This document shows, piece after piece, positions 2,610-43,000 of a stretch of DNA of 64,000 nucleotides. The DNA is from Parasitella parasitica NRRL 2501 (lineage: Eukaryota > Fungi > Mucoromycota), in assembly GCA_025201805.1 (NCBI GenBank), contig MU619298.1, positions 107,910 through 171,909 of the forward strand, in the 5' to 3' direction. The position numbers and the translations under genes were made by a program. The notes under the pieces are model-generated. The model searched no databases, was not told the origin of the DNA, and saw nothing but the letters and a program-made list of their open reading frames with translations. The number at the start of each line of letters is the position of its first letter. The first letter of the stretch is position 1.

Positions 2610-3580
2610 CCCGTTTTTGGAGCTCATAACTTTTGATAGGCACATTGCCCACTGGAAACAACCATGGTATGCTCTCTACAGATAGTGATGATCATGCCTG
2701 ATTTAATAAAGCATAAAACAAGGCATCGCACATGGGCCTTTAACAAAGTCTTGTTATTAGCGATCATATTTGAAATAACTTGTGGTTTCTGCTATTAAAT
2801 TTTCAGATTTCAAGGAAAACATGGATACCAATGTTGTTGCCAGATAGTACCAAGTCAATGCTAAGTTTTCCAAGTTAGAAATCGGTTCTATTGTCATTTC
2901 AACAAAAGTTATGAGGAAATATCTGATATTTATTATAAAAATTGAAAATAAAGCTGTTTTTGCACACAACTTTTGATAGAGGCATCGCCCAGGGGAACCC
3001 AAGTTATGCTCAGATAGCGATGCTTGTGCCTGATTTGATGGCGCATAATAAGACAGGCTTTGGTTCCCTTTTTATCGCAACCTAACAGCGACTATACGCA
3101 ATTTTCATATGAAAGTGTTTGTGTTACCAGCTGATATCTCTTTTGCCAGATAGCCCCAAGGCAACGCTAAGTTTTCCAACTTAGATTGCAGTTCTACGGT
3201 TCTTTTAGCAGAAGTTATGATCAAATACGTGTTAATCAACAATTATTTTTTTATACAAAAAAGGTTTTTGCACATAAATTTTAGTAGACGTATTGCATAG
3301 TGGAAACCACATCACGCTCATGCCTGTCATGGTCCAGCTTGGAATATTTGCTATTGCTGTTGCCACAAAAACTTACAAATTTTTTCTGCTGATAACTTTG
3401 TGTAATATCTACAAATAGTCTTTCTACGTTTTTCAGGTTTGATTTTCATCCTACGGTTCATTTAGTAAAGCTAGGACCAAAAAACTGTTTTGTACATATA
3501 ACTTTTGCTAGACAGCACTCGGCGCCCGGTAGAAACAGGAATTACTCAGATAGTCCTGATTGTGCCTGTACCAGGTACAC
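2610..3580. repeat. Degenerate tandem array of ~300-340 bp units (about 3.5 copies), probably a transposon subterminal relic
   Basis: CATAACTTTTGATAG...GGAAAC...CAGATAG.GAT...TGCCTG recurs near 2625, 2965, 3272 and 3497. GCCAGATAG...CAA.GCTAAGTTTTCCAA recurs at 2839 and 3145. Confidence 0.7.
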
Positions 3581-4810
3581 ATAAACTAATTCATACTTCT
3601 TTATTCGCAATGCATTATATTGTATTATACATGAAAATAAGTTATTTGTCAATTTGATATCCTCTTCTATTAATATTATGCACTAGATACAATTCATCAT
3701 GAATAATACACAGGAGTATTAGAGGACGCAGACTTCCTGGCTCTTTTTATCTGATGGTGTACCAATGTATCAGTACCAACTATGCAATTAATTGAGATAA
3801 AGTCATGTTGTCAGAAGTAAAAAGGACCATCACAGATTAGGGAATACAGGTTGACATATAAAGCCATATTTTTCATCAATAGATAATACAATGAATGAGC
3901 ATGACATTGAATTTGGATGGATACGATCTATTCCATTCCTAGACCTTACAACAATCATTCACATTCCTCTATTTCAGATCAAATAGTATATAAAGCATCT
4001 AACTTGATGTAAAAATAAACGATCCTCTTTTATTTTTTTTTATATACTAAATCATTGTCGGGGGGGGGAGAATACAAGTTTTTGGAATCATAATATTAGT
4101 AGTTTGGAGAGGAATCGTTCTATCACTGGAGGGATTAGGTTACAATCTACTTTGCTTCTTATACCCATTAAGTAATGAAACTCTAGCAACTCTGGGAATT
4201 TTTGTTTTCCAATTTAAACTTGATGAGGAGGTCACCACCATAGATTGTATTATGTCCTTGTGAACTTGCATGCATCTGTCCCTATTATATGGTGCAGATA
4301 TGTATAGTAGTATCTATCAACTATCAATGCTGTGGTATTTACTAACCTTTCTATCGTGAGTTAAGGAAATGTCTACCCTTCTGGCAGCAATATAATAGTC
4401 CCTTAGAAGCCAAATACTTGGCGTGAGATCACCAAGTCCCGGTCAACAACGCTGAATGCTTAGACAAAGGTAATGTCAAGATAGGCTTTTGCACTACTTT
4501 GAAACATTTGGTTACCAATAATGACTTTAATAGTGTATGTAAACGCAGTATCCTAAAAGAGAGGACCGAGGAAATGTTATGCTATCCTAATACCTATTGC
4601 GTAATAGTTATGATCTTGTAGGGCGTATGAATATTATTCTTTAAATTCTGCAGGTAATGAGATCAAATGCTGTTTATATGGACCCTACTCTTCGGGATAA
4701 GAGCCAATATAATAAGGTTAGATTGCTTGGATATTGACTAGCTTCGATTGAAATATACACATGCCATCGTCGAAAAAAAACAAAAACAAAAACAAACACG
4801 CTACTTTTGA

Positions 4811-5305: not shown

Positions 5306-6948
5306 TTAATGATAAGAGGGTGCTATCCATTTATCGGGTAATGTTGTTGCAGGTGAGTTTGTGGACTCATCCTTGTGCGTTGGAAATAAGAAATTATGGT
5401 TCTGTGCTGCCGATGCTGATGTAGATGCTGTTGCTGCCATGGATGAATGGTAAATTGGTGTTGTAGGCGCAGTGTGTAATATAGGATTGTATGGGTATGA
5501 AGATGTGTCGATTCGAATTTGCTGCTGTTGCTGCTGTCGAAGTAGACCCTCTAGAAACACAATCTTTGATCTTTGGACATCAATCAGGTCAAATGCTTTT
5601 TGCACTTCTCCAGTCAACATTTTGTACATGTCTATGTAATTGTGTCGTAATTCAATGATCTGCGATTTTAGCTGCTCTTCGTCATTAGGTATTGCTTGCT
5701 CCAAAAAATGAGGTAAATGGCTAAAGGTAGGAGCAAATGTCTGGTGATGTTGCTGTTGTTGACAGTAGACCGAGGCATCTTCTAGCGTTGAGATAGGCGA
5801 AGTCGTTGCCGTGTTGAATAAAGGGGGGTACATGTGCTGCGGGTTTGTGTCAAATAGCATGTCTGTAGGCGTAGTTGCGGTGGCAGTGCTCATAGTTTGA
5901 CGATTGTATTGTTGAAGCTGCAGGGTCAACGAGGATGAGGAGGCAGACGAAGCAGAGCGACGTCTTTCATCTAGACTGTTATTGGCACTGTCATAATCGT
6001 CATGGTTGACATCGGACTCGTCTCCTGATCCAACGTTGAGGATGGTCTCTGGATCATCCACTTCTTCCTCCTCTGTCCTTGGTTTCTTCTTGCGTGAATA
6101 ACGTGGTGTTTTTCTGCGTATTAAATGATGCAAGTCTGTTCTGCTGGGACGAAAATAGACGTGGTGCCAACGGCATGTTTCTTTGTCTTTGCTGTCTTTG
6201 GATTTACGAGCGTCTGTATCTCTCTGAAAGCCATAAATCTAACATTATTATTTTTTTCGTCAGTTTAGTCAGATGTCAATTGTATTGTCTACTTACATTC
6301 AACTGTCGAACAAATGAAGCAAACTTGCAGTGCTTGAATAATTGAGGCAGTACAATCTCCGTGAATTCTTTAGGGAAACGTTAGCTATCGATACAATACG
6401 AAAAAAGAACAACCAACTTACTTGGAATACAGTCAATGATAAACATATCAGTGCCGTTATGTTTGCACCAACGAGCATACTTCTGTCCGTTGTCGGGTGC
6501 TTGTAAACACCTATGATTAAAAAAGTAACAAGAATGTAAGGAACTTTGTTTCTTCATTTTTTTTTAAAAAAAAAAGGGGGGGGGGGAGCGAGAAAAGCGA
6601 TAAAGAGGAGTGAGAGTGAATGGGTGAGTTTGCCTCGAGATTAAAGTTCGATATGAAAAGGGGCATGTATGTTACAAATGAGAGCGACAAAGAGAGAAAG
6701 ACGGGAGAGGCTACATAATGTACTTACTGATACAGTTTCGAAACAAAGCCAGCAACCCCACGTTCAGGCTGGCTGATGCTTTCCTCACCGTCCATGTTCA
6801 TATGCGTATTGGGCGTATGGTGGCTACTGGACATGAGGCTCCAATGCGACGTAGCGTTTAGATCGGTTGGTGAATGTGAGGGATATTCTTGCTCATTGTA
6901 GGTATTAAAGGTCATTAAAGAAGGGTCATTATAATGTTGATAATCCAT
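5306..6948 (-). CDS. HSF-type DNA-binding transcription factor (multi-exon)
   Basis: Spliced HSF domain: GVAGFVSKLYQ / FIIDCIP / EFTEIVLPQLFKHCKFASFVRQLN / IYGFQR...WHHVYFRPSRTDLHHLIRRK, followed by a coiled coil and Q-rich tail. Confidence 0.9.
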
Positions 6949-7063: not shown

Positions 7064-7243
7064 CCCTCTTCAGCACCCTTACTTTTTATTGATGTAAATA
7101 GCTGCTTACGCTTTATGCTAAATGCTGTTGCTGCTGCTGCTGCTGCTGTCAGCAAGGTCTCCCTCGTGATCCCCCCAATAAAGGAGTTACATATACGGTA
7201 TACAATGCAAATAAATATGTATAATCTTAAAAAAAGATTTATT

Positions 7244-7912: not shown

Positions 7913-10900
7913 AGCGACATGTGCGTATAAATATAAATTAGGACATAAAACTTACTATACACAGCGATGGGTAGAATAAGGAATAGATCAATGTACAAGA
8001 ATTGGAAATCTCCCAGATTACTACCAAATGCATATAATAATGTCACAGATGTAAACTGGATCAAGCTGTACAATGCCATGTACTTAAAACAGCTGAAGCT
8101 AGTGACCAGAGCAGCTCTGCCCTCTCTATCATATCACATCAAAGCGTCAGCTTCCTTCCTTCACGCAGCAATGTTCTACTCTAAACTGTATACTTACTTG
8201 ATCACATCAATCACGCATTCAATGTCCATTGTGTTGCTGGTGAAAGGAGCAGCGACAGAAGCCTCTGCCTCGGAGAGAGAGATGCCAATATCTCCTGCCT
8301 TCAATGCACCACAATCGTTTGCTCCATCACCACAGAACCCAACGCAGTACCCAATATTTTGGAGCTCCATGACAAGCTCTTGCTTTTCGTCGGGCGACAT
8401 TCGAGCGTAAATGGCGCCTTTTACCAGCATGCGGTGGAGAGATTCAAGGGTGGAATGGTCGACCATCCAACGAAAGGCTTCCCCTGTAATGGCAAGAAGG
8501 TATTCCTGTTGGTGGTTTGTAAATTCATTTGCCATGTGGGGCTAAGAGTGTCGTGTTTAAGGGTCAATGGTGCTAACTAAATAAAGCAATAGGGCTTAAA
8601 CTTTTTACCTGTAATGTATCTGCGGACAACTCATAGCCTTCCTGCATGACACTTTCCCAACTCAATTCAGAATCAGGCTCGGTGGAAGACCCTTTTAAAA
8701 ACCTAGGTAGATAAATTTCTGCCGATTGATCGATCAGCCCACATTCTCTGGCCACGCTAACAGCTGTCAGAACATTGTCGCCTAGATCAATACATGATAT
8801 CAGTATACCAGCGCGCGCGCAAAAGGAGAGAGAGAGAGAGAGAGAGAGAGAAAAGAGGGAATAAAAACAATTGCTCACAACTTGCCTGTACACATGATCT
8901 GTCTGATATTTGCATTGCGTAGAGTGCTGATGGCTGAGGCAGTGCGAGGCTTGAGCTTATTTTCAAACACGATAAAGCCCAAGAACGTCAACCCAGTTTC
9001 GACTTCGTTTCTAGAGTAGAAGAGCAATTGGCACACATGTCACTTATATATTGATCAGCGCTGTTACCTTTTCAATTTGTAGAGCTTGTGCCATTTTACC
9101 CCTAACAATTGTCTAGAAGCGCATGCAATAACACGGTAGCCACGATGCGTATACTTGTACAATCTCTCTTGATAATCCTCGGGCACTTTTTATTTTTTTT
9201 TTTAAAAAAAACAACATGTGGGATGCACATTAATTACCACGTATTTCACGCTATACGACCAACTTACTTGACTCTGGAGTGCAAATGTCTTTCATGACCT
9301 CAGGCGCACCCTTGACAAACACTTCCATGGTTGGGTTTGCGAGTCTCCTGACAATGACACTCATGCGTCGAAGCGACGATACAAACTCAAACGTATGGAT
9401 AATGCCAAACTCAATAGGTGGCGCGGCCGTGGTTACCGTTTCCTGAAGTAGTGGTTTAGGGCGATTAGCAGCGGACATATTACATGCATTAAAGCGAACA
9501 ACAAACCATGTGCACGTTAATGTCCTGTCGACCTCCCGGAGGCCTTACTACTGTCGGCATGATGCCCACCTTTGCGCTCTTTTTCGTCTGCAATGCAGCC
9601 AACTCGCTTCTAGGCTTCAAGCCCATCGACGATGCTCCTCCGCTCTCCTCTAGTTCCCATTGTGTAAACTCAAACATTTTCAGATCGAGGGGATCACCCA
9701 GCAGCTCCCCGTTGACGATTTTCAAGGAATGACAGGTTGTCATTGTCCGCAAGATCTTTGCTTGCGTTGTGATTGTGTCATCGTTGTTGGGATCGACATG
9801 TGCCACTGATTTGCACTCGTTGTCAAAGAGCTTTCTGCCGCCCTGTGTCACTGTTACTGCGCGAATGCCGTGTATGTCCAAGCCATCCTCTGTTAAAGTG
9901 CCTGTCTTATCAAAGCACATGCAGTCGATTTTACCGCCAATGTTGACTCTAGGTGGAGAAATGCAAAAAATGCCTAGCTTCTTCAGTCGGCTGATGGCAA
10001 AGCTGGTGCCAATGGACAAGGTGGCAGGCAGTGCTGGAGGCACAACGATGGTGATCAAATCCAGCGCTCGCAGAACCATGGTGGTCGAGTCAATGCCAAG
10101 TCTAATAAAATTTACAGACGAAATTAAGAAACCAACGAAGGCTATACATGATGCGCTTTAATTAGTGAATGTTGAAATATGAAATAAACGTTTCTCTCTG
10201 GCAATCAACATACCTATCACGGACAGAACGCCAATAAATCTAAAAGAGTCTCTATAAAATTTGAAATTGTTGGGTTTGGGAAACAGCATAGATCGAACGA
10301 GTGCTCCCTTCGCTGTGCTGAATCCAGTTCTGACAACAATTGCTGTAGCCGTCGATATATTGTCGCCGCCCCTCACTCGAACCATCTTGGTGCCCATAAA
10401 TAAAAAATGCTTGGATATCTCTGCTGGTATACCGGATGACGACAGGTTCGTCTTTCGCAGGGTTATGTCGTTGATGGGTGCTTTGGACACAGGCACTGAT
10501 TCTCCTGTCAGCATGGACTCATTCAATATGCAGTCGCCCGACACCAGCATCGCATCACATGGCACTGTATGTATGTTTGCAATATCTATCAAGTCACCGG
10601 GAACTAGTTCAACTGAACTCAGGTTTCGCCCTACATTGTCTTGTTAGTTTTTCTCATCCTTCTTTTTTTGATTCCACCCCACCCCCTATCATTTCACAAA
10701 GAAAAAACGTTTTTTTTTTTTTTCCCACTACATGTAGCCCTTCACCCCCCCCCCCACACACACACACGCTCGCACACACTTACATGATCCACTACGAAAT
10801 ACCCGTACAGAACATTCGAAAAATGACATGTCCTTCATTCTTTTCATAGTCTTAAAAAGGAGAGCAAAAACAAAAGGGGTTAATTGCCATTGTCGTGTAC

Positions 10901-12276
10901 CTTGCATGCTAAGATTACCTGTTTTGTTTCAATCAATGTTGATATGATACTAAATGCGCTGATAATGAATATACAAAATGCATAGTAGTAATAGTCGTCC
11001 ATACACCACAACAGGATGCTGCCAATCTGAAACACGTAGAACGGATTCAACACTTCGTCTGTGAGCAGTTTGGATGTCGGCTTCTCTCGTATGTTGATCA
11101 GGTTGGGCCCAAACACAGATAATCTCGCATGGTGCTTTTCGGTCGTCAATCCCAGCTTAAAGTTCCTTGTGCTGTTCCAAGACTGGTCTTTCCAAAATCT
11201 GCAAAAATGTGTTAAGGTCGACATGATCCTCCTGTTGAGAAACCCAAACAAATCAAAAAAAAAAAAAAAAAAAAAAAACACACTCACCCGACAATAAGGA
11301 ATTTATGCAGCCTGGGGTGGTATGCCAAACGAATGTATCGGTATTCCACCAGCATGAGTTGGTTGATTGGGTCGTCCATGTTGAGCAATTGGCGAGCTTC
11401 TTCGGTGCTCACATTGAGTGCATGCAGTTCCTGCTTGATTTGGTCCAGCGAGAAAATGGTGCCAATGGTGCCTTGGTACCATTCACGAAAGGGCCTGATT
11501 ATCTCTATTTCGTTGTATTGGCTCTAAGGTGCGAGTTAATCACACATTTCGGGTGTCGTTGCTGGGTTGCATACCTTGAATACAATCCATTCGGCCTTCT
11601 CCAGGGGCACCTTTATACCTGTCCATGCAATATACCATTTCGGCACCCATCTACAAATCAGCCAGAATATGCCCAGGGATAATACAGAGAGCAGGCGGTA
11701 GGCAAATAAGTTGAGTCTATTAAACTTGTAGGCTTGTATATGGATCTGAACATCCTCATCTTCTAATAGCAGAGTCTGTCCATCTTTGGTATCGTTAGCA
11801 ATAGCATTCAATCCGCTTATGCGAGTTTCTGTGTTGTTTCGAGACGCCACCACATGTTGAATTGTGTCATCATCGCCGTCGCTTGGCTCGTCTCCGTCGT
11901 CGTCTCCATCGTCGTCTTCGTCGTCGTCTTCGTCGTCATCGTCATCATCTGCAGATGACTCCTCATCGCTTGTGTTGAGCTCTCTGTCGCTGTCCTCCTC
12001 ATCACTGTCTTCTACCGAGCTTGTGCTGTTGCGTCTACGTCTAAAAAGCCCGGTGCGATGGCCACCATGGCGAGCGTACGAGCCCAGAGTGATGATGTTG
12101 GACGAGCGATAGGAAGTCCCCGTAGCTTCTAATGGATCAATGCCAGTTACAGGTTGAATGGGAGGGGTGTTTATGAGAGGCGCAGCGGAATCCCTTCTCG
12201 CACTGTTTCCGTTTCTCGAATCTACCGATGATGCACCATACATTGAACGTGTCTTGGTCGCAGGATGTGTCGACAT
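7244..12276 (-). CDS. YPK9: P5B-type ATPase (Ypk9/ATP13A2-like), multi-exon
   Basis: PPALP, DKTGTLT, LTGESVP, GDN(V)[18 protein letters not shown] and [12 protein letters not shown] motifs across consecutive minus-strand exons; acidic N-terminus. Confidence 0.95.
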
Positions 12277-40008: not shown

Positions 40009-43000
40009 CTATTTCCATTGAAAGAAATCGCAGCTATGCTCATCGTTCGGTCCATCCTTCGGTTCAGTTGGTCTCGAACATATATAAAACACTCTGCCAG
40101 TATTGGGTCCTTTCTTGGATACGATAATTTCAACACAGGGTTGTTTATGGAATGTGCAAGTTGGTATTGCAGGTGCTTTAAAGATCGACGTCCATGCTTT
40201 TGCTGTCACCTGCTTTTCTTGAGCTTCCTCGACCAATGCATTTAGATCAAAATCTTGCTGCTGATCTTCATGTTGGGGCAATTGCTGCTTTGTTGACGTT
40301 ATGTTTGAAATCGTAGCCGTGTCCGTAGTAGTGTCTGTCTTTTCGGTAAAATAATTCGCTAATGCTGTAATGGGAGCGGGTTTCTTATTGAATGTTGCGG
40401 TTTTCTTTGATTGTTTTGTATTAAATGATGTCAAGCTGAAGAAAAATAAGTTGGGCCATTACAGAAAAAATTGGGACGCCAATAATGAAAATGGGACAAA
40501 CAATAAAATTTGGGGCACTCATTTGAAAATGGGATAAAAAAATAGGACATTTATGTTTTTAGTTATGTAGGCACATCTTGGAATACAGTTTTATACAGTT
40601 ACAGTTACGGTTATGGTAACTAATTGTTTCTTAATCCTTTTATTAAATATGTCTCTACCAAAAAATTTAGCACCTGGAAAAGACCTGATGTCAAAACGGA
40701 TTATACAGGATCCAAAAGTAATTGACCATATTACCGAGGCATTAACAGAAACACAAGATGACTATTTTGTTGGTAATTGCGAATGGAGGAATGGGATCCG
40801 CTCAGACATAGTTTTGAAGCCAAAATCTTCTATGGATCTCCTCCCCCTCTCATCATAGTAGAGATTCAACATAATGTAAACAAAAAGTTTCTAAAAAGAG
40901 CTTTTGGATATTGTTTGCAAGCAAGTACAAGATACGATGTAGAGCCAATTCTGCTCATTATATTTACAAGAAAGCTCAATCAAAAAATTCAAGACGATGC
41001 AATAGATAGTCGGCTTCCAGGCATCTACTCATACTTTTGCAAACCATGGGCAATAGACACACTACGATTGTTAAGAAATAACCCAAGTACGGCTAAAGGG
41101 TAAAGTGGGCTTGTCAGGTTTTGTGTAAAATTATCTTCTCACATGATTAGACACTCTACTACCCATGGTTTGCAAAAGTATGAGTAGATGCCTGGAAGCC
41201 GACTATCTATTGCATCGTCTTGAATTTTTTGATTGAGCTTTCTTGTAAATATAATGAGCAGAATTGGCTCTACATCGTATCTTGTACTTGCTTGCAAACA
41301 ATATCCAAAAGCTCTTTTTAGAAACTTTTTGTTTACATTATGTTGAATCTCTACTATGATGAGAGGGGGAGGAGATCCATAGAAGATTTTGGCTTCAAAA
41401 CTATGTCTGAGCGGATCCCATTCCTCCATTCGCAATTACCAACAAAATAGTCATCTTGTGTTTCTGTTAATGCCTCGGTAATATGGTCAATTACTTTTGG
41501 ATCCTGTATAATCCGTTTTGACATCAGGTCTTTTCCAGGTGCTAAATTTTTTGGTAGAGACATATTTAATAAAAGGATTAAGAAACAATTAGTTACCATA
41601 ACCGTAACTGTAACTGTATAAAACTGTATCCCAAGATGTGCTATTCATCCCAAATTTTATTGTTTATCCCATTTTCATTATTGGCGTACCAATTATTTCT
41701 GTAATGGGCCTAGTTTTTTTTTGCGGCTCAACCTATTTTCTTCAGCTGTACTTGCAGATCTTTTTAAAGAGGAAGTGGGTTGAGCTGACAAAGATACTGG
41801 CGGTTGAGAAGAAGAGGGTATGTTTTGTGGAAGTGAGGATGGCTTCCCAAAGTAACTTGACAATTTTTTTTGTTTAAATTCTGAAAAGTTAGACGTCAAT
41901 AAAGGCGAAGTGTAAAACGGCGCATGGTGATCTTGGATATCTTGATTTATCTGCAAGAAATCAGCATACACAGGACAGTGATCCGAACCAAAAATATCCG
42001 ATTGAATGTCTGCATATTTAAACCATGGCTTCAGTCCTTTGGAAGCCAGTATATAGTCGATTCTTGTGCCTATATAGAATTAGAGTTGGTTTCATGTAAC
42101 AAAATGCTTCAATATGTATTATATACCGAAATTTCCAGGTCTGTTTACGTGTGTGTTACGCGATAAAAGTTAATTGTCTAATTTGATTTCCTAAAACAAG
42201 TTACATGCCTCGCATTTAATCTTGTGTTCCAACCTTAAAAGTTACAGATAAATAAATAGTATAATATAACTGATTGAATTTGCTTACACGTGTACATTTT
42301 TGAGCGATTAGGATGGTATAGACGAGCCATGTCAATCAGTGGACCTTTGGGGTCAATCATGTTATCCAGCCAACGTCTATGTGGTAAGTCTTTAAAATCA
42401 AAAATATTATTGTCTTTCATGCTTTGTTTGGCATCAAAATGGTCAATTTCTTCGTGTACCGCATTTATATCGCCTACAAGCAATACCTGCTTGCCATGGT
42501 TTAAAAACGACTCGATCCGTTTCTGGACACAATGATGATAATCCATCTTGAAATCAATTCTTGTCTCGTTGGAATCATTTGGGAAGTAAATGTTGAGCAA
42601 GGCAAAGAACCCAAAGTCCAGAATGATGCAGCGACCTTCATCATCTAGTATTTTAGCTGGGGTACCCAAATCGTATACAAAGTCGTTATCAGTATCTAAT
42701 ACGCCAGTAATGCCTTCGTAAATTCGCCTAGGCTGCATAACGGTGTCTTTGACATATACCGCCACTCCAGAATATCCCAATTTGACTTTAGAAAAGGAGA
42801 AATAGGCGTGGTAGCCTGGCACAAGAGCCATTTCTCGTGTTAGCTTTGACCGTTGACATTTAACTTCTTGAAAACTATGTTTGTGAATATGAATATCGCA
42901 CATTGAGATATATAATCATAGTCAATGTACCAAATAATGTCAGAATCCAGCGCGTCGAGCAAGACCTTGCGAAAAGTTTAGTATTAATTGACAGAATACA

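Follow-up and report, generated by a model that had tools for sequence, protein, structure and literature searches.

A probable decayed Tc1/mariner-type element with a folded-back Rpn-like nuclease gene fragment in the APN2-like gene of Parasitella parasitica

The window analysed here is a stretch of 64,000 nucleotides (nt) of the Mucoromycota fungus Parasitella parasitica NRRL 2501 (assembly GCA_025201805.1, contig MU619298.1, positions 107,910 to 171,909), in which an APN2-like gene on the minus strand has one exon split by a 1.3-kb insert at approximately 40434-41748. The assignment to this species is borne out by another protein of the assembly, which matches a named P. parasitica protein at 100% identity. 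The exons of the APN2-like gene were searched one by one. The exon encoding the endonuclease/exonuclease/phosphatase domain is located at 42238-42903 on the minus strand (PF03372 Exo_endo_phos, E 1.6e-7), and is the only match in the genome; APN2 is single-copy. The exon hit by the insert is the last of the gene. Its 5′ part, supported by an open reading frame (ORF) at 41693-41971 and by an RNA contig, occupies 41751-42070 on the minus strand, and its 3′ part, which holds the GRF zinc ribbon and the stop codon, occupies 40009-40433 on the same strand (PF06839, E 2.6e-11; match span 40012-40434, downstream of the insert). With the Exo_endo_phos domain upstream and the GRF zinc ribbon downstream, the insert lies inside an APN2 exon, as had been proposed in an earlier note made on this DNA from its letters alone.

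The insert as a whole is a quasi-palindrome (foldback) that begins and ends in a perfect 12-nt terminal inverted repeat (TIR; 40434-40445 and 41736-41747), in agreement with the inverted termini noticed earlier. The outer 107-137 nt per side are approximately 90% alike, with two indels, and enclose inner arms of 480 nt each (40571-41050 and 41162-41641) that differ by a single base; over a slightly wider span (40571-41057 and 41155-41641) the inner arms are 99% complementary. From left to right, the insert consists of a left Tc1/mariner-type terminal region on the plus strand (40434-40570), made up of the TIR and subterminal AAAATGGGAC-like repeats; a left cargo arm on the plus strand (40571-41050), with a GTTACN hexamer array at 40596-40621, an ATG at 40649 and codons 1 to approximately 137 of an Rpn-like nuclease gene (profile matches at E 1e-28); a unique centre (41051-41161); a right cargo arm on the minus strand (41162-41641), with a hexamer array at 41592-41617 and an ATG at 41563 reading downward; and a right Tc1/mariner-type terminal region on the minus strand (41642-41748), with the canonical end ...CTTCAGCTG. 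The centre is the true continuation of the minus-strand gene copy, as determined by alignment to an intact relative at locus L084, and contributes codons of approximately 138-171 with an in-frame TGA. The right arm is the longer, template copy, and the foldback junction is found at an imperfect microhomology beside CCATGGG.

Perfect inverted duplications are known from long reads and from amplification, and a palindrome of this kind could in principle be an artefact of assembly or library preparation. However, independent k-mer unitigs of DNA run X1, which may itself be the source of the assembly, have a depth of 151x in the flanks (approximately 1x), 288x in the arms (approximately 2x) and 126-148x in the centre (approximately 1x), and this 1x/2x/1x pattern argues that the foldback structure is not an assembly artefact. 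The indels and approximately 10% substitutions in the outer arms are not expected of an artefact either, and six runs, all of which may be the source strain, contain 98% of the words. The chance of an artefactual palindrome is thus practically negligible. The cargo-bearing form is single-copy in the genome, and DNA searches of the genome with the whole arm or with the terminal 217 nt returned no second copy of the element.

The termini of the insert read CAGCTGAAGAAAATAGGTTG(A/G)GCC followed by the AAAATGGGAC-like repeats, giving a TIR of approximately 22 nt with a 5′-CAG terminus. A degenerate pattern of the terminal 22 nt matched 59 sites in the genome as opposed to 0 for the reversed control; the terminal family was detected only by this pattern and not by DNA search with the arm. 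Relatives identified with the pattern are a 5.3-kb element on contig C125 with an identical 22-nt terminus, a 245-bp miniature inverted-repeat transposable element (MITE) on contig C9, and 18 paired copies of 2.6-3.9 kb, mostly approximately 3.8 kb, whose terminus is identical at 18 of 22 positions. The subterminal regions of the window element, on the left and on the right, align with those of the C125 element, the C9 MITE and the 3.8-kb copies. When the flanks of 20 paired copies were tabulated, TA followed by C(A/T)G was present at all 40 ends, at a background TA frequency of 7%, and the flanks were otherwise unrelated, placing the copies at unrelated sites as expected of a mobile family. 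The C125 relative holds remnants of DDE_3 (E 3.6e-13) and HTH_Tnp_Tc3_2 (E 5.5e-10) domains. The window element has a canonical right end (CAGCTG|TA), followed at 41749-41750 by an intact TA copy of the target-site duplication (TSD), the dinucleotide found at every one of the 40 tabulated ends. The left end reads T-CA-AGCTG instead of TA-CAGCTG; at this damaged junction (40431-40433), T-C-A takes the place of the T-A-C of the relatives, which represents the TA target copy and the first base of the terminus, a difference that an AC>CA swap or the loss of TAC could account for. The insert is very probably a decayed, non-autonomous element of the IS630-Tc1-mariner type that integrated at a TA within the final exon of the genome's single APN2-like gene, and it is probably immobile now.

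The earlier note had instead described the insert as a candidate for an undescribed transposon type, a TIR element inserted at A^T without a TSD, with the PD-(D/E)XK nuclease either as cargo or as the mobilising enzyme. Exact removal of 40435-41746 does leave APN2 in frame (SASTLTSF), the element has no DDE ORF, and its left flank has no readable TA. However, the A and T that this reading places outside the element are the A/T of the conserved CAG/CTG terminus, part of the C(A/T)G found in all 20 TA-flanked copies, and the flank tabulation, from which A^T without a TSD had been expected, gave TA at 40 of 40 ends. The copy that shares the identical 22-nt terminus holds DDE_3 and HTH_Tnp_Tc3_2 remnants, and the multi-copy cassette of Umbelopsis nana, described below, is carried by an element that itself encodes a DDE_3 transposase. 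TSDs in other copies or a conventional DDE transposase of a known superfamily were among the findings that the note itself had named as refuting its reading. Two reconstructions that assume a TA target, SASTSF (TA with AC>CA) and SASMTSF (TA with loss of TAC), are equally in frame, so that a TSD-free insertion is no longer the best explanation of the site. A new TSD-free TIR superfamily with A^T insertion, possibly mobilised by the nuclease, is therefore extremely unlikely, and the insert does not qualify as an undescribed transposon type.

Among the TA-based reconstructions, removal of both TAs breaks the APN2 frame and retention of one preserves it. Two orthologous ORFs of relatives (P0166 and P0167) are uninterrupted; LKR and NTKQSKK are separated in them by seven residues, the number that loss of TAC would also give. 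Several points weigh against integration of a Tc1/mariner-type element at a TA. The linker of the orthologue peptides is too diverged for them to discriminate among the three in-frame models, and the non-canonical left end means that a TA duplication is not directly readable at the window copy. No empty site was found, and no sequence of APN2 at ≥88% likeness came from two other runs under the species label; TA flanks alone do not formally distinguish a duplicated target from part of the element. The C125 relative, moreover, is a rearranged mosaic with two different transposase remnants, which are therefore only candidate traces of the cognate transposase of the window terminus. In one older run under the same species label (X11), the terminal 37 nt (41714-41750, with 3 mismatches) occur at two other loci but APN2 sequence is absent at ≥88% likeness, and the genome of this run is either much diverged from the assembly or mislabelled.

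The non-canonical left junction could also be taken as a sign that a double-strand break in APN2 was repaired by capture of a palindromic fragment with transposon ends, and the interior shows fold-back synthesis, which is a hallmark of aberrant repair. However, both ends of the insert match Tc1-type termini to the base and in inverted orientation, and one of them forms an exact CAG|TA junction. Random capture would not stop at both termini, making this origin very unlikely in comparison with integration of a Tc1/mariner-type element.

The ~3.8-kb family consists of a TA-flanked copy at C1:273010-276824 and 17 similar paired places (loci L059-L076), with near-identical ends and the terminus CWGTTGACGAAACTAGGTTGGGCC. 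One 84-aa frame near an end of this family has a weak Cas12f1-like TNB match (E 0.005), which suggests that the family may carry Fanzor/TnpB-type cargo. At these loci the terminus varies in its second base (CAG or CTG), and it does so independently at either end of copies that are otherwise identical, with counts of 18 A to 2 T on the left and 13 A to 7 T on the right, and the same alternation occurs at the ends of the U. nana element (loci L086-L088). TAC(A/T)GTA is the excision footprint of Tc1-type elements, which the CAG/CTG alternation recalls.

The coding content of the element (D..SD..EIQ) is present twice in inverted orientation and is the only coding content found in it. Each arm contains a short GTTACN hexamer array, an ATG and approximately 137 codons with the motifs PGKD, RSD, E-I-Q and KR, and the minus-strand copy extends through the centre to approximately codon 171. 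The cargo has 82% nt identity over 566 nt with the intact cassette at L084, which comes from another Mucorales sample (product P0010). This match runs from the hexamer array to the turn-back point of the sequence, where it stops at approximately 41052, and the alignment reveals a 5-nt insertion and the TGA in the cargo; in the left arm the gene copy has a frameshift near 40846-40855. The fragment keeps the D, E-I-Q and R residues but is frameshifted, and judged from its reading frames the cargo is a pseudogene fragment with a +2 frameshift, a premature TGA and a truncation.

Near-perfect identity between the arms starts just outside the promoter array and the ends are only approximately 90% alike, indicating that the duplication took place within an element whose two ends were already present. 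In the first state of such an element, a piece of a Mucoromycota-specific Rpn-like PD-(D/E)XK gene, up to approximately codon 171, would have stood with its promoter hexamer array between the two ends in place of the transposase. A fold-back template switch at a short microhomology would then have copied codons of approximately 137 to 1 and the promoter in inverted orientation, the outcome being a 111-nt centre between two near-identical 480-nt arms. The outer 107-137-nt Tc1-type ends would be recognised by a DDE_3 transposase acting in trans. We infer this order of events, the trans-acting enzyme and a post-insertion origin of the left-end damage from the structure of the insert and its relatives. 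In the C125 relative, an internal palindrome (L058:776-1601) has the 3′ end of the DDE_3 ORF on both strands, head to head, and fold-back rearrangement thus seems frequent in such elements.

The window element shares with non-autonomous Tc1/mariner elements and MITEs the 5′-CAG terminus, the ~22-nt TIR, the subterminal repeats, the lack of its own transposase, and relatives that are TA-flanked and, in the C125 copy, contain remnants of DDE_3 and HTH_Tnp_Tc3_2 domains. It differs from them in that its interior is a foreign gene fragment in fold-back form and not a simple transposase deletion, and in that one terminus is damaged. A host-type gene fragment with its promoter between transposon ends, in an inverted duplication with a microhomology junction, is also reminiscent of Pack-MULE-type transduplication and of fold-backs produced by abortive gap repair, however the superfamily here is Tc1/mariner and not Mutator. 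The likeness to the TSD-free Spy elements and to Helitrons, which insert at A^T, is limited to the A...T appearance of the flanks at the window copy; the relatives are TA-flanked and associated with DDE_3, and neither a Rep/helicase nor a hairpin-CTRR end is present.

Transcript evidence for the effect of the insert on APN2 comes from the contigs of one run that is only guessed to be RNA, and contigs lose rare isoforms. Reading from APN2 into the insert adds 17 residues before a stop codon at 41693-41695, at the end of the ORF 41693-41971. An RNA contig with a depth of 33 is unbroken from 42070 to 41714, 35 nt inside the element, and passes a candidate GT donor at 41732; a second contig covers 40153-40426 of the downstream exon at a depth of 7, approximately one fifth of the upstream depth. 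The likeliest product of the gene is an APN2 protein truncated before the GRF zinc finger by read-through transcription. If the insert were introner-like, a donor at AG|GTTGAG, which lies 16 nt into the element, would be joined to a TTTTCTTCAG acceptor at its opposite end, restoring an in-frame APN2 with five extra residues; the sense strand has both sites, and the RNA contigs still include the downstream exon. However, the upstream contig is unbroken through the proposed donor (41733/41732), the downstream exon is the one at reduced depth, and no joint across the element is listed among the contigs of this run, although the four upstream APN2 introns are joined correctly in the same data. Removal of the insert as an intron is therefore unlikely, and truncation by read-through remains the preferred account.

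The gene from which the cargo derives belongs to a large family. In the 33-Mb genome of P. parasitica, at least 62 six-frame matches are found at at least 46 loci, and approximately half of these matches contain stop codons. A profile search returned 1,139 clusters at 50% identity, in which the named members belong to Mucorales and Umbelopsis and are all annotated as hypothetical. Pfam and NCBIfam scans of the cargo ORFs gave no match at the gathering score. Among 21 members, the only recurrent sub-threshold Pfam matches are DUF2887 in five (best E 6e-4) and Transposase_31 in four (best E 5.9e-3), and a language-model feature search also gives Transposase_31 and DUF2887. With its Pfam matches below threshold, the family is called Rpn-like here and is not assigned to PF04754.

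The N-terminal domain of an AlphaFold2 model of the protein is restriction-endonuclease-like; the mean pLDDT of the model is 82, and most 10-residue blocks of this domain exceed 90. In a shape search of the ESM Atlas the nearest structures are bacterial Rpn, PDDEXK_2 and Transposase_31 clusters (TM 0.43-0.52, 164-192 residues aligned, mostly residues 1-197), and the best domain-level match in the PDB is the nuclease NucS (2vld; Z 7.7, root-mean-square deviation 3.1, 105 residues aligned). Foldseek matches to the PDB are all weak (E >0.03), many of them to restriction-type nucleases; in the VIA wide search, matches to the C-terminal helical hairpin predominated, and a profile search against PDB sequences gave nothing meaningful. 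In an hhalign alignment to E. coli RpnA (pairwise E 0.021), the SD, E-x-Q and R of the family fall on D63, E82/Q84 and R94, and E71, Q73 and R83 are nearly invariant in the 21 members. Mutation of RpnA D63, E82, Q84 or R94 abolishes RpnA activity (PMC5350276). These models and alignments support the resemblance of this predicted nuclease family at the level of working like an Rpn nuclease. The earlier description of the coding content as Rpn/PDDEXK_2-like is supported by the fold model, the ESM Atlas neighbours and the equivalents of RpnA D63, E82, Q84 and R94, with Pfam matches below threshold.

Bacterial Rpn proteins (YhgA-like, Pfam Transposase_31/PDDEXK_2; Kingston et al. 2017, PMC5350276; Zhong et al. 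2023, PMC10400941) and the fungal family have in common the restriction-endonuclease-like N-terminal domain, the equivalents of RpnA D11, D63, E82, Q84 and R94 with the same E-x-Q-x9-R spacing, multiple copies within genomes, and the pairing of a nuclease with a related inactive protein. In contrast to the bacterial proteins, the fungal family is eukaryotic, with named members so far in Mucorales and Umbelopsis, remains below Pfam thresholds, and has a different, helical C-terminal half. Its inactive partner is encoded by a separate tail-to-tail gene covering the N-terminal domain and is not an internal C-terminal translation product, and its cassettes are flanked by hexamer arrays.

Intact genes of the family occur as tail-to-tail pairs, in which the long gene keeps the catalytic residues and its short paralogue no longer does. 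Pairs of a long D/E-x-Q/R gene and a short degenerate paralogue are located at L026:1546-3190 on contig C60 of Parasitella, at L086:7097-9472 in U. nana, and at loci L081, L078 and L084, and Mucor mucedo and Benjaminiella likewise have a convergent partner gene. In the short paralogue of Parasitella C60, VLIEVQ has become IVINTI, and in that of U. nana the changes are D to G, Q to H and R to T. Immediately upstream of each of the two genes lie arrays of GGTACN-type hexamers, inverted relative to one another, which border the pairs at L078:4695-4939 and 7128-7205, L081:3911-3965 and 6464-6581, L026:1340-1376 and 3300-3840, and L086:5200-6970 and 9610-11000, corresponding in the window to the arrays at 40596-40621 and 41592-41617. 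The hexamers seen (GGGTAC, GGTCAC/GGTCTC, GATACG, GGTACC and GTTACG) vary between cassettes, as though every nuclease pair possessed a repeat of its own.

For the U. nana pair, complex prediction gave an ipSAE of 0.73, compared with 0.01 for the best control, which supports binding; 51 of 78 solved complexes reach this mark, as do 2 of 108 mismatched pairs. The runs agreed in at least 96% of contacts, and the pLDDT of the partner was at least 75. The modelled interface is pseudo-symmetric and may simply mirror the dimer mode of the family. The tail-to-tail genes represent a candidate toxin-antidote or regulatory pair.

Rpn-like genes are found near Tc1/mariner transposases in P. parasitica more often than uniform scatter would predict. 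A DDE_3 match is located within 1 kb of 5 of the 46 Rpn-like loci (0.6 expected under uniform scatter) and within 2 kb of 8 of the 46 (1.0 expected), approximately eight times the value for uniform scatter, an excess that clustering of transposable elements could inflate. Three further loci, including that in the window, have Tc1-type ends but no transposase. At the second, a 1.9-kb unit on contig C99 (L006:1148-3047; C99:32288-34187), 179-nt inverted ends that belong to a second Tc1-type family (TA|CAGTGCGGCTGG...) enclose an intact Rpn-like ORF of 338 aa. One of these ends is canonical and the other reads CGAGTGCGG, making this, like the window element, a cargo-bearing copy with one damaged end; 1.85-kb copies of the same TIR family enclose DDE_3 open frames of 476 aa. 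The third is a one-ended relic on contig C153 (L043:1499-2373; C153:49750-50624), in which a TA|CAGGTAAAGAAAATAGGTTGGGCC terminus of the type seen at the window element is separated by approximately 130 nt from the 5′ part of a different Rpn-like gene; this gene part lies in a 257-nt palindrome (97%), and no right terminus is present.

At a locus on contig C45 (L008:1-3576; C45:31432-35007), an Rpn-like gene is situated between 1-kb inverted repeats that are 97% identical, each repeat containing the 3′ part of a DDE_3 transposase ORF, with a Tc1-type terminus 1.2 kb further out. From this arrangement, the C45 locus looks like a composite of two inverted Tc1 copies. DDE_3 fragments adjoin the cassette in Cokeromyces, Benjaminiella and Rhizopus loci as well. 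A strict scan for TA|CWG...CWG|TA around 30 family loci gave only trivial matches inside long inverted duplications, and a paralogue pair in Mucor mucedo has rearranged flanks without crisp TIR/TSD boundaries.

The genome of U. nana (GCA_054906655.1) contains at least three copies of a ~13-kb element (loci L086, L087 and L088) that are 92-98% identical, lie at unrelated chromosomal sites and are each bounded by TA|CAG...CAG|TA. One arm of the element contains an intact 344-aa DDE_3 ORF (E 1.1e-26), and the cassette is located in a central 4.35-kb segment. The element is apparently an autonomous, recently amplified Tc1/mariner. Comparison of the copies shows the two arms exchanged around a central 4.35-kb segment of constant orientation, comprising the cassette and the inner parts of the arrays; this relative inversion is what flip-flop recombination between the inverted arrays would be expected to produce. 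Because the U. nana cassette travels in a TA|CAG-ended element with its own 344-aa DDE_3 ORF, the nuclease is cargo and not the mobilising enzyme. The view of the window insert as a non-autonomous member of a TIR family with a restriction-fold nuclease therefore stands with the nuclease as cargo, and its alternative, in which the nuclease mobilises the element, fails. The family of the captured gene is repeatedly linked to Tc1/mariner elements, and its capture in the window may consequently not have been accidental.

Literature searches returned no account of fungal Rpn-like genes or of such genes as cargo of Tc1/mariner elements, and as far as the searched literature shows, Rpn-like cassettes as recurrent Tc1/mariner cargo are undescribed. 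A known comparison is provided by the Fanzor/TnpB genes of eukaryotic Tc1/mariner elements, in which a non-transposase nuclease gene is likewise found inside TA-inserting TIR elements; the cargo of the window type differs in having a PD-(D/E)XK fold and not RuvC, and no guide RNA is expected. It is possible, though at present doubtful, that there exists an undescribed class of Mucoromycota Tc1/mariner elements carrying a two-gene Rpn-like module, composed of an active nuclease and a dead paralogue, tail-to-tail and predicted to heterodimerise, between inverted GGTACN-type hexamer arrays, as functional toxin-antidote or break-inducing (homing/retention) cargo, of which the window element would be a decayed member.

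The locus itself represents an ordinary TA-targeting Tc1/mariner derivative that probably deprives the only APN2-like gene of its GRF zinc finger, and it introduces no new superfamily. Its main value lies in the cargo, a large eukaryotic Rpn-like family without a Pfam entry and with a conserved pair of active and inactive genes. If the proposed class is real, the Rpn-like module would be a protein-guided counterpart of Fanzor/TnpB cargo, and if the module serves the transposon, it would provide a second, protein-only case, beside Fanzor, of eukaryotic cut-and-paste elements with an accessory nuclease.

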